From Zygnema circumcarinatum SAG 698-1b (lineage: Eukaryota; Plantae; Zygnematophyceae): 64,000 nt of DNA. The stretch's first letter is position 1. Each line of letters starts with the position of its first letter. Shown in pieces: positions 3,821-10,739 of this stretch. Position numbers and translations under genes: made by a program. The notes below the pieces were generated by a model. It was given only the letters and a program-made list of their open reading frames with translations. It had not been told where the DNA came from and did not search any database. The stretch is from contig CM074812.1 in NCBI GenBank assembly GCA_037447605.1, positions 868,001 through 932,000 of the forward strand, read 5' to 3'.

Positions 3821-4403
3821 CCCCCGCCTTACAGCAGCCCTACCGGCAGCCTGCTGCCAGCGGAGGGGCAACGGCTTGTGCCTGCTGACTACTGAACTGC
3901 ACTGGGCCTGTTTCACGGCTTGTTTTACGGGAAAATTGCAAACATGTGAACTCATAGAACAGGGCTTCTCGAACTTTGACATTTCATTTCGGGACATACG
4001 GATAACTCGAAACAAGTACTCGTACCGGTACTTGTGAATCCAGTTTGATTTAATTTAGAAGGACAAGATGTACTGATTTTGACTTCAAATTTTTGGGGGA
4101 ATGTCAAAGCCCGCCACGCGGTACCGTACGAACGCGAACGTGGCGAGACCCGTATGGTAAGGTACAGTAAGGAGATATTTTCATCGCTGACCAAGCTATG
4201 TGCGCAGTTAGCGTCGAATTGAAGATTTATAAGGATGTAGCAGTTCTGATTTGTCTAAACTACAGCTATTAACTGCAACTTTAACTTCTTAGTTGGGGCA
4301 AAGAACCCCAAACCCTCGTTCTGACGAGGTCATGGCTGCATGCAGTTTCCCTTCGGAAGGGAGGTGCAGGGGCTGCTGCTACCGCCTTCCAGGAGGGAAG
4401 GAT

Positions 4404-4411
4404 TAGGGTTT
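4404..4411 (-). promoter_or_regulatory. telo-box (TAGGGTTT on +) just upstream of the methyltransferase ATG
   Basis: TAGGGTTT lies 7 nt before GCCATGG at 4418. Confidence 0.45.
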
Positions 4412-4417
4412 GCGGCC

Positions 4418-5986
4418 ATGGCGGATCTGCAGGCTGCGGGCAGGGAGGCGAGCTCTTGCACCTCTCCCCAGAGAGGCGATGGCTATGTGGCGCGCCTCGA
4501 CCGCGTGCCGTGGGCTTTTGCAGGAACAATTGTACATTTTCGGAAGCTCAGTCGCAAAATATTCTTCTTCGACCTTCGCTTGCATCCCCCTCTTTGTGCT
4601 GCAGGTGAAGGAATGTCGGCGATGCTAATAGATTTTGAAGCAAGTTTATCTTCGATGGCAGTAGAGACGCCTTTGATAGCGTCCTCGTTGGGCATCGATT
4701 CAGTCGCCTTTGAAGGAGGAGGCAAGATTGAGGTTGTGTTGAAGCATCCCCTTTGCGCGGATGTTAAAAAATATTCATCGCGGCTTCATTTGGGAGACAA
4801 GGTGCTTGCTCGCGGGCAACACCTGGAAAAGGTTAATGACATGAAGCGCAATCATGTCGTCTTTCATGCATTTGAGGTCATTGTTCTTGTAAACATCAAG
4901 CAGACATCCTGCAGATTTCCAGCAGTAGAGAGGCCTCAGATGCATGAGAGTATAGCCAGTCGTCAAGAGCACTCTGCACTGTGTTCTTCCCCAAATTCAG
5001 AGCCTCAAACAGAGAATTGCATGGCAGACGGCAATTGCACTTCACAGGAGGAATGTGCTGGCTTGGATTTGATGAAGATAACTTCAAAAGTTGAATCGGC
5101 AGCAGGTGTAGATAGTGGCCAGAAAACTCATACTGTGGAAGTGGAAGGGTTGGCAGCTGGGTGCGAAGCTCAGCCTGTAGAAGAAGCGAGAGTCGCAGCA
5201 GTAACTTTATTCGAAGAAATTGATTGGCGGAAGGCATGCAAATACTGGATAAACACTCGAAGCTGCAGTAATGGTGCACTGTGTCCTTATGAACATCCTA
5301 CTGGCCGTATCTATGAACTGACTCGAAAGGCTTGGGTAGCGAACAGGATCGAAAGGCGGAGGGTTCAATTTGCTGAGAAGGAGGACCCCTTCGATCCGCA
5401 TGCCAAGGCACGGAAGGGTTTGCGTGCACTGGTTTTTGCAGAATGGTTAATGGGTACTTTTTCAGCAGCTCTTCTCTCGTCAGGAGAGGGTGTCCTAGAT
5501 ATTGCGGGTGGGAGGGGGTCTCTTTCCTTTGCATTGCATGTGATTCACAGTGTCACCACGACACTTGTTGACCCCCGACTTCGAAAACTTTCTAGATTTG
5601 AGCATCGATACCTTGCAAGTCATCCAGAAGCAAGTCTCCCATCTGTAGTTCAAGACGAATTTGATCTTGACAAGCCGCAGTGGAGGTCTATGGTGCGATC
5701 CAGTTCATGCCTTGTGGGTTTACATCCCGATGAGGCTACAGAACTGATAGTAAAGGCTGCCGTGGAATTCCGGAAACCATTTGCTGTCGTCCCTTGTTGC
5801 GTCTTCCCAGCTTTGTTTCCAGAGAGAAAAATAGTTCTCGGGGGGTCGCAACAGTCCGTTGAGTCCTATGAGCAGTTCGTGGTTTATTTGAAGGCGTTGG
5901 CAGAGGCTGGAGGTGCTCATGTGAACATTGGTTGGTTGAACATAGAGGGAAAGAATCAAGTGGTTTACTGTAAATCATACTATTGA
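4418..5986 (+). CDS. intronless protein: OB-fold + CCCH zinc finger + class I SAM-dependent methyltransferase-like domain (about 522 aa)
   Basis: The 548-codon ORF has a likely start at MADLQ (4418). OB-like GTIVHFRKLSRKIFFFDL...LHLGDKVLARG; C-x8-C-x5-C-x3-H at 5237-5296; SAM motif VLDIAGGRG, LVDPR, GLHPDEATE and PFAVVPCC. Confidence 0.85.
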   Translation: MADLQAAGREASSCTSPQRGDGYVARLDRVPWAFAGTIVHFRKLSRKIFFFDLRLHPPLCAAGEGMSAMLIDFEASLSSMAVETPLIASSLGIDSVAFEGGGKIEVVLKHPLCADVKKYSSRLHLGDKVLARGQHLEKVNDMKRNHVVFHAFEVIVLVNIKQTSCRFPAVERPQMHESIASRQEHSALCSSPNSEPQTENCMADGNCTSQEECAGLDLMKITSKVESAAGVDSGQKTHTVEVEGLAAGCEAQPVEEARVAAVTLFEEIDWRKACKYWINTRSCSNGALCPYEHPTGRIYELTRKAWVANRIERRRVQFAEKEDPFDPHAKARKGLRALVFAEWLMGTFSAALLSSGEGVLDIAGGRGSLSFALHVIHSVTTTLVDPRLRKLSRFEHRYLASHPEASLPSVVQDEFDLDKPQWRSMVRSSSCLVGLHPDEATELIVKAAVEFRKPFAVVPCCVFPALFPERKIVLGGSQQSVESYEQFVVYLKALAEAGGAHVNIGWLNIEGKNQVVYCKSYY

Positions 5987-6287
5987 TGCGGAAGCCGTTG
6001 TAGAGTGAGAGAGCCTGAGAACCTTCAAGAAAAACGAAGGTATTGATAGCTGATTAGGTTAAGTTACTTTAATGAAAAAAATATAAGAACAGAGAGTAGG
6101 CTCGACAACCCTATAAAGATATGCGAATTTATCGCTGTACGTCCAGCAACCTGTCGTTAATGTTCCAATGTCATTGATCTTGGCAGGTTGTAGAAAGCCC
6201 TTGCAAGTTGGAAGTATTCTGTTTCTGACAAACCCCTTGTATGAGGACTTCCTGTTTACCAAATGCCCAAATTTTATACCATATATC

Positions 6288-6430
6288 GGGGGGGTCAGAC
6301 TTGAATTCCTCTCTTGGAATCCGAATTTGCGTGCTACCGATTACGGTACTATACGACATGGTCCAGGATCAGAATCCGTAGCAAGCCAATTCGGATTCCA
6401 GAACTGCGAAGTTAGGTCTGAATCCCCCTA
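6288..6430. mobile_element. MITE-like element with imperfect GGGGGnnTCAGACyT terminal inverted repeats
   Basis: GGGGGGGTCAGACTT (6288-6302) versus AGGTCTGAATCCCCCTA (6414-6430). A perfect internal 13-bp inverted repeat, TGGAATCCGAATT / AATTCGGATTCCA, is also present. The termini resemble the element at 29906. Confidence 0.5.
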
Positions 6431-6527
6431 TAGTAAAAGTTTAGACTCTTGGCATAAAGATTCCATTGCCGGCCATTCGTGATTTCATAGGATGGGTTTC
6501 TATTGAGGGTCCTTTGGATGGCATCGA

Positions 6528-6581
6528 CCAATCTACGCTTACCAAGTGTGCATTCAGTCCGACGTGGCGAGCTATGATTGG
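6528..6581. promoter_or_regulatory. inverted pair of CCAAT-N9-CCACG-like elements
   Basis: CCAAT-N9-CCAAG on +; exact CCAAT-N9-CCACG on -. Confidence 0.5.
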
Positions 6582-6659
6582 ATTGTGTTACATTATGCCC
6601 TCAATGGAGGTCCACCATGTGCCATGGCACCCATGGCCTGGTTTGCCATTTTTTGCCAA

Positions 6660-7800
6660 TTCTATTGCAACATGCCAAGTATTAGTTGACTCTGTTCCAT
6701 GCGCAACCTCCAAATAATGACCGAAGGAAGGCTGCGAACAACGGAACGTTCAACAACAACATGCGCATGTGAAAGGTCGACGCGGCGCCGACCTACGCTG
6801 GCACGGAAACGTATTTCCAATGAGGGCAGCACGTGTGGCTCCCAAGACGCGCCACGTTGGATTTGCGGGCTCCGCTTTTTAACATGTAGCCAATCATCTT
6901 TCACCACGTGGATGATAAGTTGAACTCTTCTGCGTAGTGGCTCTCGATTGGAGGCGTGCCGGTATTGTTTTTTTCGAAAAACTCTGAACACGGTGTCCTA
7001 CCAAAAAAACGTACACGCGGCAGCCACGTCAGTGTCACGTCAGCGCCACGTAGTCAAAAAGGGCCGACGCCAAACCGCCTGATGGAGCACCACGCTGACG
7101 AGCCCCTAGCTTACGTGACTTACGATCGACGGTTCCAAATGCACGAAGGAGAACGATCGACGGCTGGAAGGACGCCAGCAGGAGCGTTCCAATGGTGACT
7201 ACCCTATACGACAAAGTCTCGATTTTCTCCAATCTCAGCCGTTGATATGAGGACGCCGAGAGATCTCCGCCGTCCGAAACTGGCGAGCCGGAACGAGACC
7301 AGAAAGCCGCGGCCCCAAGTCGGCGCGGAAGATCTGTCGGTCCGGCAGAAACGGCCGGCGCCGGTCGGCAACGCCAGCCTTATTGAAGGCGACGGCCGGC
7401 GAGGTCGGCACCGGTTGGCCGACTGTCACGTGGCAGCGTCCTGCCGCTGGCGGCCAAGGCTGGACCGGCGCGACCACCGACAAGGGCCCCGCGCGGTCCC
7501 GGGCGGCAGGAGGGGTTCGGGCAGGAGATAAACGTCTCTCATGGCAGGGAGGTAAACGTTTTGTGCGAGGCTTGGCCAATCGGGAGAAGGTGTAGGACCA
7601 ACTGGACCAATCCGAAGGATCTGGGTAGTGAAAAAACGTTTTTTAACCTCGTTCAAAAATATGTTGTTGATGACATGGCAGTTGGAGGTCGGCAGCAGAT
7701 TTGTCGGCAGACGGCGCGGAGGTGCCACGTGGCGCGCGGAAGCTGCCCGGCGAGCAGTCGACGGCAGTCAAAGGGCCGCAGCGAGATGTAATCGGTACTC
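6660..7800. mobile_element. GC-rich non-coding region, probably a transposon relic
   Basis: No credible ORF. Dense CACGT/GCCACGT motifs and an ATCAACGGCTGAGATT motif (minus strand) resemble plant DNA-transposon arms. Boundaries are not defined. Confidence 0.3.
6890..6951. promoter_or_regulatory. inverted pair of CCAAT-N9-CCACG-like elements
   Basis: Exact on + (6890-6908); CCAAT-N9-CTACG on -. Confidence 0.5.
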
Positions 7801-8195
7801 GGAACGGCTGGCACGACTTTCACAAAGGTACTGATTCGGTGTTGCGACAGAGCAGACATGGTGATAGACTGGACTGGTAGCGCTCGGAACAGCTGAGTGC
7901 GGGCGGAGCTGCTGCGGGCTTGGACAGGAGAGGGAGAGAGAGAGGGAGAGGGAGAGGGCGAGGGAGAGGGAGAGGGAGAGGGATAGGGAGAAAGAGGGAG
8001 GGAGAGGGAGAGGAAGGTAGGGAGGGAGGGAGAGGGAGAGAGAGGGAGGGAGGGATCGAGAGGGAGTGGGAGAGTGGAAAAGGGAGAGGTAGAGATTCGG
8101 AGAGGGAGAGAGAGGAAGGGAGGAAGGGAGAGAGGGAGGGAGGGAGGAATCGAGAGAGAGAGGGAGAAAACGCGAGAGGGATAGGATTGAAGGAG

Positions 8196-10325
8196 ATGGA
8201 GGGGCCAGAGAAGATACCTGGCGTGAAGGTGAGATTTCTAATTAATCACATATGCTTCTTATTTCTCCTTACTGCGATGGCTCTTCTCTGCAGCACATAA
8301 AAACTGCACATCGAAATTCCATTTCATACGAATATTTCATCTTTGTCCCCTCCAATTCCTAATCCCTCCCTCCCTCCCTCTCTCTTTCCCCTACCTTTCA
8401 TCCTCTCTCTCTCCCTCCCTCTCTCTCCCTCCCTCCGTCTCTCTCCCTCCCTCCCTCTCTCTACCTCCCTCCCTCCCTCCCTCCCTCCCTCCCTCCCTCC
8501 CTCCCTCCCTCCCCCCCTCAATAATTTGATTTTTCGCAACCCTATTTCGCATATACCCCCCCCTCTTACCGACCCCCCTTTCCCCTCCCCTGCAGGGAAA
8601 CCACGATGGAAGGAGAGCCCCTGTTCCGCGTTTCGGAGAGTGGGAGGAGAAGCCCCTCCAAGGCACCTACTCGGGCCAGTTTGAGCTCGCCATGGCGACC
8701 CGCCTCGGCGCAGAGGCAAAATCAACAAAGGAAGATCTGCGGAAACCTCGCCCTCCTCCCTCGTCCACTGCCTCGCAGGGAGGGTCAGGACAGGACTCCC
8801 TTACGAAGTCAGATGCAAAAACTGCATATAGAGCACAAAGAAAATCGACTTCGTCTACTACGAACCCTTTGAAGAATGGTTCCGCGGAAGCGTGGGAAGT
8901 GAAGAAACCTCCTTTTGTTTCTCCTGCAGCATGTGCACCTTCTGATCTTCCTCCCAAGGGGGGGACAAGTGGTTCTAAAGGAAGCAGTCCGGGGAGAACA
9001 ATGGATCGGAGACAAGGGGGAGAAGAGAGGAGGAGGCAGAGGGTGCGGGAGTACAGCGCGGAGGAAAGTGCGGGTGGTGAACATTCCAAGGGGGAAAACT
9101 TAAATGAGACCTCACATAAGAGAGATGGCGGAGAGAGGGAGAAGAGGGAGAAGCCTGCACTCATACATCCTCCTCTCACTCTTCAGGTTGAATCTCTGAA
9201 AAACTCTCCGAGGTCAGAAAGCGGAGAGTCGATTCGGAGTCCCGGAAGCAGAACCCCCAAATTTGGAGGCTGGCAAGAAGCTCAAGGTTTAGTTGCATCA
9301 GGGGAAAGCTTTACTCAGCAGTTTGAGGTGATGAAGGAGGAGAAGAGAAACTCTCCGTTACGTGTCGAAGCTGGTTCAGAAACTAATCGGAAGGCCGGTT
9401 ACAGTATGCCTGAGAGGAAAGTGAAGGAAAAGGAAGGAGAGGGTGCTTTAGCCTCTTGGAAAATGGAGGAGAAGACTGCTACAAGGAGATCATCTGAAGG
9501 GAGTGATGTTCATGTGCGTAGGGGAGGCTTAGTGGTGGGTCCCACTTTGGGAGGGCTTTCTGAAACTTTGGGAGGGAGGTGGTCACAAGGTTCGGTAGGA
9601 CATGGAGATAAAAGAGATGCTGTTACAAGGAGACTGTTGGATACGTCGGAGAGAGGGAGGAGGGAGGGAGAGAGTAATAGCTCCGGGAAAGTGTTGAGGA
9701 CACCAAAGTTTGGAAGCTGGGATGGAGCGTCTGGAGAGGGGCAGTACACAAAGGAGTTCGGGTACATAAAAGCAGAACGCATGGCTGGAAAGGAGGGGGG
9801 AGGAGGAGGTGGAGGTAAGGGAGGTTTAAGTTTGACCAAGGTGGTTCCACATGACGATAAGAATTCAGCATCCTCTCCTATCAACTCGGTAAGGATATGC
9901 TTGATTTTGTCTTCCCCATTTCAAAGCATGCGGATGGGTTGCGATGCGTGTTATCGTTTATGTGCTTTAGACGAAATTTGTGAGGGGCAAGTAATAGGTT
10001 TTTTGCTGGTGAATGAGCTTGACAGGGAATCATTGCACCTTTGCAATGGGCCGTTGTCCTTGGGTTGAATTGGCTTGATGATGGGTAGAGAGATTTGCAT
10101 TTGCAGAGATGTCCCGTTGGAAGTCGAGGTGTTTTTTCGACCATCCTGGGTTAAGCTGCCTTCTTGTCAAATGTATTTTTGTCAATCATGATGAGGAGGA
10201 GAGGGACAGACGCAGAAAGGGGAAGATTCTAAGTGCTAAGAATCCTTGCGTTTTGTGGGAACTTGCAGAAACCACCTCATACAGGACCACTGTTTTGCTG
10301 CCTGGCCGCCCTGACGATGGAGTAA
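8196..10325 (+). CDS. RIN4: RIN4-like / NOI (AvrRpt2-cleavage domain) protein with three NOI motifs and a C-terminal Cys pair (about 460 aa)
   Basis: join(8196-8228, 8596-9888, 10269-10325), all phase 0. Motifs are VPRFGEWEEKPLQGTYSGQFE, TPKFGGW...GESFTQQFEVMKEEK and TPKFGSWD...GQYTKEFGYIKAER; the protein ends GPLFCCLAALTME*. Confidence 0.8.
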
Positions 10326-10739
10326 CTATCCAAAGAAAAGGGACGAATAAATGAGCGCTTTGTCTTTGGATTACATTCGATCTAAAGATGAATGAGCGGC
10401 TTCATTCGTAGGGTGAACCAAGCCGATGTCGATGTCTGCAGTTCTCTTCTCGCGGAGTGCTCAGTTGCTTTGTGAGAAGCAGCGTGTCCAGGTGAATAGC
10501 GTCATGTCTGTGAGCTTGAACCTTAATAGGAACAGTGATTAGGAAATAAGTGGTCACTCAGGGCTCGTCTTTGGCAGCGCTCAAGGGGGAAATAGGTCGG
10601 AGGCTGTGAAGGGGACTGGGTGACCATTGGTAGGATCGGGGAGACATACTTCTTGCATGTCTCATTTTTCGTTTTTTTTTTTTTTTTTTTTTCTCTTTTG
10701 TGGGATCTTTTGTAAAGGGTTTTGCTCACTAAGTACATG

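Follow-up and report, generated by a model that had tools for sequence, protein, structure and literature searches.

RIN4 is a protein of 211 residues and is among the most studied immunity hubs of plants. Two features define the NOI family to which RIN4-type proteins belong, the NOI motif itself, a domain of some 30 residues, and a C-terminal cysteine with an aromatic flank; 1-3 cysteines lie in the last 12 residues, and their acylation leads to membrane tethering (PMC3661340). An intron directly before the C-terminal NOI was present in 48 of 51 RIN4 homologues, and 41 of the 51 had a short exon ahead of the N-terminal NOI (PMC3661340). NOI6, a one-NOI protein, binds EXO70 subunits (PMC5853926), and binding of rice Exo70F2/F3 requires the PxFGxW core of the motif (10.1101/239400). 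Zygnematophyceae already possess three EXO70 subfamilies (10.64898/2026.01.28.702365). The family has been described as reaching "as far back as moss" (PMC3661340), and the moss two-NOI proteins are the deepest-branching members described (PMC3661340, PMC9514647). A survey that recognized one-NOI and two-NOI classes only found the family absent from the sampled green and red algae and from Marchantia; streptophyte algae were not among its samples (PMC9514647). Predicted proteins with more than two NOI motifs evidently exist in grass proteomes and were filtered out in one study (10.1101/239400).

We analyzed a 64-kb stretch of DNA from the alga Zygnema circumcarinatum, referred to here as the window. 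On its plus strand, a three-exon model at 8196-10325 encodes approximately 460 residues (11 + 431 + 18 codons). An earlier sequence-only reading had proposed an exon at 8196-8228, an acceptor at 8595, a terminal exon at 10269-10325, and three NOI units, and all of these features were found at those positions. The predicted coding part of exon 1 (8196-8228) consists of an ATG and 10 further codons (M-E-G-P-E-K-I-P-G-V-K) and ends in phase 0, which is compatible with exon 2. Its donor (AAG/GTGAGA, GT at 8229-8230) was the best among all ATG-started exons in 5990-8560, matching MAG/GTRAGT at 8 of 9 positions. The predicted intron 1 (8229-8595; 367 nt, GT..AG) has a CT-rich tract (8388-8519) and, ahead of the acceptor AG at 8594-8595, a pyrimidine tract; the stretch preceding that AG is 95% pyrimidine. 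A GA-rich (GGGAGA-like) tract on the plus strand at 7927-8147, just 5' of the start codon and complementary to the CT tract of intron 1, is probably promoter or 5' leader.

Exon 2 (8596-9888) is 1293 nt in length and has 431 codons without a stop. It forms the low-complexity, disordered body of the protein, holds all three NOI units, and ends at the donor TCG/GTAAGG. The last stop in its frame lies at 8527, no in-frame ATG occurs between that stop and unit 1, and the first in-frame ATG within the exon, at 8692, starts an unspliced ORF of 458 aa. We infer junction 1 (8228/8596) as the sole good phase-compatible splice pair, and it would be the sole route to translating unit 1. Intron 2 (9889-10268; 380 nt, GT..AG) is followed by the coding part of exon 3 (10269-10325), which is preceded by TTGCAG and comprises 18 codons and a TAA. 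An antisense gene was considered and rejected, as both minus-strand ORFs (8667-9179 and 9510-9884) are mirror frames of low complexity. An Rfam scan of the whole 64-kb window gave no match. The neighboring gene is an intronless ORF whose closest clusters in the ESM Atlas carry the labels Oomycota and Chlorophyta. Exact look-ups of the 458-aa ORF and of this intronless ORF, the latter with two start choices, matched no recorded protein.

RNA-like contigs were placed on 9859-10659 only and cover junction 2 and the 3' end. One contig of run X1 skips exactly the 380 bases of intron 2 (GT..AG) and joins 9888 to 10269, confirming the junction and with it the terminal F-C-C exon of the sequence-only reading. 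The contig holding the splice and the 3' exon had a depth of 309, compared to 45 for the intron contig, and intron 2 was partly retained in RNA-like runs. Unspliced contigs had depths of 24-45. Over 10268-10659, the contigs of X1 and X2 had depths of 309-358. These same X1 and X2 contigs define the minimum extent of the 3' untranslated region (10326-10659), which reaches a T-run at 10660-10690; 34-37 more letters in each contig were left out as repeat. Runs X1 through X5 contained 95-98% of the words sampled from 8596-10400. The gene is real and expressed, and the cysteine exon is spliced on.

Each NOI unit has two parts, a PxFGxW core and a second motif of the form Y/F-S/T-x-x-F. Unit 1 (8611-8703) reads V-P-R-F-G-E-W, 8 residues, Y-S-G-Q-F, with PRFGEW at 8626-8643 and YSGQF at 8668-8682; its second motif has Ser where Thr is usual. 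Unit 2 (9241-9345) reads T-P-K-F-G-G-W, 12 residues, F-T-Q-Q-F-E-V-M-K-E-E-K, with PKFGGW at 9256-9273 and FTQQF at 9310-9324. Unit 3 (9688-9780) reads T-P-K-F-G-S-W, 8 residues, Y-T-K-E-F-G-Y-I-K-A-E-R, with PKFGSW at 9703-9720 and YTKEF at 9745-9759. All three are on the plus strand and are separated by linkers of approximately 180 and 115 residues. The consensus of the AvrRpt2 cleavage site has Val, Ile or Leu at the position where units 2 and 3 have Thr. A profile HMM built from the three units found no fourth or degenerate extra unit in the protein. Six-frame translation of the window yielded 3 P.FG.W matches, which were exactly these units, whereas such matches averaged 0.17 over 200 shuffles and never came with the second motif. 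Chance motifs were therefore rejected, as three two-part units lie in one frame where the shuffles lead one to expect 0.17 cores and no two-part unit.

Whether all three units are translated depends on where the protein begins. Translation from ATG 8692 would leave unit 1 outside the protein, as a remnant in the 5' leader that is untranslated or was lost recently, and the product would then have two units, the known RIN4 architecture (PMC3661340). That ATG is the first in-frame one within exon 2, and junction 1 rests on sequence logic, the RNA-like contigs covering 9859-10659. However, both halves of unit 1 are intact and correctly spaced, the unit shares the frame of the ORF that follows it in a stretch that is stop-free from 8596, and only 0.17 core matches are expected by chance in the six frames of 64 kb. 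Thirty nt 5' of unit 1 is a strong acceptor, and 367 nt above that acceptor comes an ATG exon that matches in phase and has a near-consensus donor. Family members usually have a short exon ahead of their N-terminal NOI (41/51 homologues). We consider the two-unit product improbable and continue with a protein of three units.

Exon 2 matched PF05627 (AvrRpt-cleavage) over three stretches with 43.5 bits (E 1.9e-11). Three hits to this model had been anticipated from the sequence; three stretches were indeed recovered, but when the units were scanned singly only unit 2 (24.5 bits, E 1.7e-5, profile positions 4-36 of 37) exceeded the gathering score of 20.3 bits. Unit 1 alone scored 16.7 bits (E 0.0048) and unit 3 alone 15.1 bits (E 0.014), so that each unit was significant by itself (E <= 0.014). 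Searching 177,635 PDB sequences with the three-unit profile returned Arabidopsis RIN4 C-NOI peptides as the top two matches (2nud_C, E 2e-4; 8two_B, E 0.028), with the alignment extending past both motifs. Unit 3 is the closest of the three to the RIN4 C-terminal NOI, aligning with the peptide of PDB 2nud chain C over 31 residues that include the trailing K-V-R-E-E-R. The three nearest ESM Atlas clusters were all RIN4/PF05627 and from Streptophyta (scores 0.87-0.88, 196/256 features in common). By its sequence, the protein is a member of the NOI/RIN4-like family (PF05627), and the claim that it joins three NOI units to a terminal Cys-Cys is borne out by the Pfam match, the PDB profile match, and the spliced cysteine exon.

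Searches for full-length relatives were run exon by exon, the joined three-exon protein not being the query. The PDB search with the whole of exon 2 returned a chance match only. A word-indexed search of 5.8 billion clustered proteins, queried with exon 2 as a whole and with the regions of units 2 and 3, found no relative, because low-complexity words swamp the candidates and short motifs have too few common 5-mers. Likewise, exon 2 had 0 matches at E <= 1e-3 when 1.84 billion representative proteins were searched exhaustively, the motifs being too short for so large a library. With no relative in either collection, there is no cross-species conservation to indicate selection on the units. A metagenome scan with the unit alignment found one locus, L001. 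It was rejected as a multi-NOI relative, being a land-plant-like RIN4-type sequence, and its C-NOI scored 58.8 bits on PF05627.

These results could be read as a gene without function, either chance look-alikes in a low-complexity ORF or a gene in decay. The linkers are of low complexity, no homologues were found, and the per-unit Pfam scores are weak compared to that of the L001 C-NOI. Against these points stand an open frame of 431 codons, three two-part motifs where none is expected, a cysteine exon correctly spliced at high depth, and RIN4 as the best PDB match. We regard this explanation as close to refuted and return to a functional NOI family gene.

The opposite possibility, that the protein is a true RIN4 orthologue and in this lineage already acts as a guarded hub of immunity, with pathogen effectors targeting it and NLRs monitoring it, is quite unlikely. 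The units are most like the RIN4 C-NOI, including a Thr that aligns with Y-T-H-I-F and the basic-acidic stretch beyond it, and the nearest Atlas clusters bear the name RIN4. However, no similarity was detected outside the units, there are three units and not two, and the intron found before the last NOI in 48/51 RIN4 homologues is missing. The motifs are common to single-NOI and RIN4-type proteins and thus by themselves give no orthology. Since the remainder of the protein is disordered and without detectable relatives, we take it from its sequence to be a divergent member of the family that carries an extra unit, for which RIN4 orthology is not demonstrated. RIN4 orthology and the "immune/exocyst hub" of the sequence-only reading were not upheld, given no detectable similarity outside the units and no RIN4-typical intron before the C-terminal NOI.

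Exon 3 ends in ...P-L-F-C-C-L-A-A-L-T-M-E, with F-C-C at 10293-10301 (residues 10 to 8 counted from the end). This tail agrees with the cysteine rule of the NOI family in having an aromatic-flanked Cys-Cys on its own small exon, spliced on in the RNA-like contig. By analogy with other NOI proteins, F-C-C is presumed to be an S-acylation anchor. In exon 2, 81% of the residues are polar or disorder-promoting, and the units hold 7 of the 8 Phe and 3 of the 6 Trp. AlphaFold2 gave exon 2 a mean pLDDT of 43.7 and a pTM of 0.16. On this model, the protein is predicted to be almost wholly disordered outside three short linear motifs.

Taken together, these data favor, with a probability that we put at roughly three in four, an expressed three-exon nuclear gene for a disordered tether of approximately 460 residues with three NOI units, a divergent member of the NOI/RIN4-like family. 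Judged by what is known of land-plant NOI proteins, S-acylation of the Cys-Cys would pin the chain to the plasma membrane, and each NOI unit would serve as a docking site for a cytosolic partner. Phosphorylation of the Ser/Thr in the second motif could act as a switch for docking. EXO70-type exocyst subunits would be the best candidate partners; if one were bound at each unit, the three units would act as a multivalent membrane tether. The EXO70 genes of the alga lie outside the 64-kb window. A part in immunity or defense, and cleavage by AvrRpt2, may be suggested by the same analogy.

A broader scenario can be offered tentatively, and we think it somewhat doubtful. Multi-NOI, lipid-anchored, disordered scaffolds might be the ancestral form, arisen in the ancestor of conjugating algae and land plants alongside the three-way split of EXO70, with two-unit RIN4 and the small one-unit NOI proteins as reduced derivatives later co-opted as effector targets or NLR guardees. 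The genome would then contain several such scaffolds, a small family in which the units number three, four or more and the anchors differ, with S-acylation as the anchor of this member.

The NOI family is probably older than land plants. If so, the design of NOI motif plus lipid anchor originated before the move onto land, and the number of units is variable within the family. An origin of NOI in the same ancestor as the EXO70 subfamilies would make NOI-EXO70 testable as an ancient module for secretion or membrane targeting and not only as an immune invention. The value of the finding has limits, in that motif copy number is a modest change and function in this alga is something we infer throughout. 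Our literature search found no paper on three NOI units or on NOI proteins in streptophyte algae, in keeping with the three-NOI variant put forward in the sequence-only reading.

Among known proteins, Arabidopsis RIN4 and its two-NOI land-plant homologues resemble the protein in their PxFGxW plus Y/F-T-x-x-F units and disordered body. They are also alike in that a last exon of its own encodes an aromatic-flanked Cys among the final 12 residues, and in having a short exon ahead of the first NOI (PMC3661340), which here is the predicted exon 1. In contrast, RIN4 proper has two units, one N-terminal and one C-terminal, where the algal protein has three, and the approximately 460 residues of the latter compare to 271-304 aa for the nearest Atlas clusters. 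The algal gene lacks the intron that is typical of RIN4 ahead of the C-terminal NOI, units 2 and 3 lying within one exon of 1293 nt. The last intron falls 8 residues ahead of the Cys pair, compared to 0-1 in RIN4 homologues. The linkers of RIN4 have no sequence similarity to those of the algal protein (E <= 1e-3, two large protein searches), and the units score 15-25 bits on PF05627, a model trained on land plants.

One-NOI proteins, such as Arabidopsis NOI1-NOI9 and others, share the motif pair and the C-terminal Cys anchor. However, they have a single unit and are small and comparatively ordered (PMC9514647), whereas the protein described here is long and disordered and has three units. The two-NOI proteins of Physcomitrium, with which comparison was made by description, likewise come from a non-seed lineage and have long disordered bodies and a last intron that falls near the Cys residues without directly adjoining them (PMC3661340, PMC9514647). 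They differ in having two units with extra introns between them, whereas the algal protein has three units in a single-exon body. The NOI integrated domain of the rice NLR Pii2 has the same PxFGxW core, which in that protein is an Exo70 docking site (10.1101/239400). In Pii2 the domain is joined to an NB-LRR portion, whereas the algal protein is free-standing and predicted to be lipid-anchored.

Exactly three matches to the P-x-F-G-x-W core were found in a six-frame scan of the 64-kb window, and these were the three NOI units of exon 2 in the gene at 8196-10325 on the forward strand. Each core is followed after 8 to 12 residues by [YF]-[ST]-x-x-F. The cores lie on the forward strand at 8626 (unit 1, V-P-R-F-G-E-W ... 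Y-S-G-Q-F), 9256 (unit 2, T-P-K-F-G-G-W ... F-T-Q-Q-F), and 9703 (unit 3, T-P-K-F-G-S-W ... Y-T-K-E-F), which bears out the three units claimed by the sequence-only reading. Across 200 shuffles, the core matched 0.17 times on average and the two-part form never, so the units are not attributable to chance. Seven of the 8 Phe residues and 3 of the 6 Trp residues of exon 2 are inside the units. Trp residues outside them occur at 8893-8895 (Trp 100, A-E-A-W-E-V-K-K-P-P-F), 9457-9459 (Trp 288, L-A-S-W-K-M-E-E), and 9580-9582 (Trp 329, L-G-G-R-W-S-Q-G), in contexts that faintly recall the G-x-W-[DE] portion of an NOI core. These sites may be remnants of additional units; none of the three was picked up by a profile of units 1-3.

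The Pfam AvrRpt-cleavage (NOI) domain, PF05627, scored 43.5 bits on exon 2 with 3 matched stretches, compared to a gathering score of 20.3 bits. When scanned singly, units 1, 2, and 3 scored 16.7, 24.5, and 15.1 bits (E = 0.0048, 1.7e-5, and 0.014), and the two linkers between them, cut out, gave no score. Each unit is significant singly, and routine Pfam annotation would flag the middle unit alone. The three hits that had been expected were obtained as stretches of exon 2, but only unit 2 passes 20.3 bits by itself. The C-terminal NOI of L001, a land-plant-like RIN4-type sequence (metagenome contig Ga0214503_1045272, 1-1303), reached 58.8 bits, indicating that units 1-3 are divergent from a model trained on land plants. 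A profile of units 1-3 only, compared to all PDB sequences, returned two Arabidopsis RIN4 C-NOI peptides as its top matches (2nud_C, E = 2e-4; 8two_B, E = 0.028). Unit 3 alone aligned with the RIN4 C-NOI peptide over both motifs and the next basic-acidic stretch, with Y-T-K-E-F-G-Y-I-K-A-E-R placed against Y-T-H-I-F-N-K-V-R-E-E-R. The three nearest ESM Atlas clusters were all RIN4/PF05627 of Streptophyta (0.87-0.88, 196 of 256 features shared), a consistent lead. On its defining features, the protein belongs to the NOI family. Neither exon 2 as a whole nor the stretches surrounding units 2 and 3 had detectable relatives among 5.8 billion clustered and 1.84 billion representative proteins.

The ORF list holds a single ATG-to-stop ORF here, 8692-10068, which runs on into intron 2 and is the 458-aa ORF named previously as the only one in the track. 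Translation from the ATG at 8692 would leave unit 1 untranslated and yield a two-NOI protein, a reading that we consider improbable. In the exon 2 frame, the nearest upstream stop is at 8527 and no ATG follows it in frame before unit 1, which is therefore translatable through splicing alone. Four AGs are available as acceptors, and only that ending at 8595 combines a pyrimidine tract with the correct phase. When the 149 pairings of an ATG with a donor in 5990-8560 were compared, the donor of exon 8196-8228 came closest to the consensus (8 of 9 positions) and the exon was in the correct phase; a short exon precedes the N-terminal NOI in 41 of 51 RIN4 homologues (PMC3661340). For these reasons we accepted 8196-8228 as the predicted first coding exon (forward strand; ATG at 8196, 11 codons, donor AAG|GTGAGA), joined to exon 2 at 8596. 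The predicted intron 1 (8229-8595, 367 nt) ends in a 95% pyrimidine tract followed by AG at 8594-8595. Exon 2 (8596-9888) is an open frame of 431 codons with the donor TCG|GTAAGG. Intron 2 (9889-10268, 380 nt) has TTGCAG at its 3' end, and coding exon 3 (10269-10325) has 18 codons and TAA. A GA-rich tract just 5' of exon 1 (7927-8147) and a CT-rich tract in intron 1 (8388-8519) show 70-79% complementarity across about 105-131 nt. If both are transcribed, their pairing could loop out exon 1 with its donor and could influence use of the first junction; alternatively, they may be mere low-complexity sequence.

Of the words sampled from 8596-10400, 95-98% were present in five RNA-like sequencing runs from two studies (X1-X5). 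Contigs of X1 and X2 were placed on 8150-10700, and their evidence spans 9859-10659 and bears on the second junction. An X1 contig passed from 9887/9888 to 10268/10269, skipping the 380 bases of a GT..AG intron, and extended to 10659 at a depth of 309, which confirms the terminal exon bearing F-C-C that had been proposed from sequence. Contigs containing intron 2 had depths of 45 (X1) and 24 (X2), whereas the last exon stood at 309 and 358 in these runs, a pattern that indicates RNA with some intron retention. The unspliced contigs (9859-10297 in both runs) could represent intron retention or pre-mRNA. A retained intron 2 would end translation at 10066-10068, before the Cys tail is reached, giving the 458-aa ORF as an unanchored isoform. 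Another X1 contig (371 nt, depth 4.8) tracked intron 2 at 10144-10195 and continued for 255 letters absent from the stretch; possible explanations are a minor alternative junction, the edge of a repeat, and a chimera in the contig itself. Contigs also broke at a run of about 25 T on the sense strand at 10660-10690, within the 3' untranslated region.

Polar or disorder-promoting residues, among them Gly (14%), Ser (12%), Glu (10%), Arg (9%), and Lys (8%), make up 81% of the exon 2 product. A single-sequence AlphaFold2 model had a mean pLDDT of 43.7, a pTM of 0.16, and nearly no secondary structure; by itself weak evidence of disorder, the model is in line with the composition and the disorder known for RIN4-type proteins (PMC9514647). 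Exon 3 ends in ...P-L-F-C-C-L-A-A-L-T-M-E, which conforms to the NOI family rule of 1-3 Cys in the last 12 residues with a flanking aromatic residue (PMC3661340).

The residue before the core Pro is Val in unit 1 (V-P-x-F-G-x-W) and Thr in units 2 and 3. In RIN4, the second-motif Thr acts as a phospho-switch. Land-plant NOI proteins are anchored by acylated C-terminal Cys, as in RIN4, which is thereby tethered to the membrane (PMC3661340). NOI6 binds EXO70A1, and fragments cut at NOI sites lose most binding (PMC5853926). In rice, RIN4c and the Pii2 integrated domain need their PxFGxW core to bind Exo70F2 and Exo70F3 (10.1101/239400). By analogy, the algal protein is most likely a disordered chain pinned to the membrane and displaying three docking motifs, which would make it a multivalent tether with EXO70-type partners most plausible. 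The immune/exocyst hub suggested previously is not supported in that form: no result here points to a role in immunity, and AvrRpt2-type cleavage of the units would be a formal possibility only.

A literature search found no description of proteins with three, four, multiple, or several NOI domains. Judged by title and abstract, no literature joining RIN4 with streptophyte algae, zygnematophytes, or charophytes concerned the family there, and in two such papers RIN4 is named only among the references. The family has been traced "as far back as moss" (PMC3661340), and only one-NOI and two-NOI classes are recognized, with the family absent from Marchantia and the algae sampled (PMC9514647). [quoted passage not shown] The upstream neighbor (4340-5986, forward strand) is an ORF of 548 aa without introns, which matched a CCCH zinc finger weakly (21.1 bits, under the cut-off of 29). 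Its nearest ESM Atlas clusters (0.96-0.97) were labeled Oomycota and then Chlorophyta, with a methyltransferase family lower in the list; this mix of labels is unexpected in a streptophyte gene and speaks neither for nor against a streptophyte lineage.

The RIN4-type sequence L001 carries a canonical C-terminal NOI (A-V-P-K-F-G-E-W-D...Y-S-G-I-F-N-K-V-R-D-E-K) and the tail C-S-C-C-G-W. Upstream of it is R-W-E-D-Q-G-T-H-L-Y-A-N-Y-F, apparently the latter part of an N-terminal NOI that an intron splits directly before the Trp. The algal gene has three NOI units compared to two in RIN4, and lacks the intron before the last NOI that is conserved in 48 of 51 RIN4 homologues (PMC3661340). Its last intron sits 8 residues from the Cys pair, and its linkers share no similarity with those of RIN4. 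The sequence-only reading of a three-NOI RIN4-like protein holds for the family and, with the first exon as predicted, for the number of units, but because of these four differences the gene does not qualify as a RIN4 orthologue.
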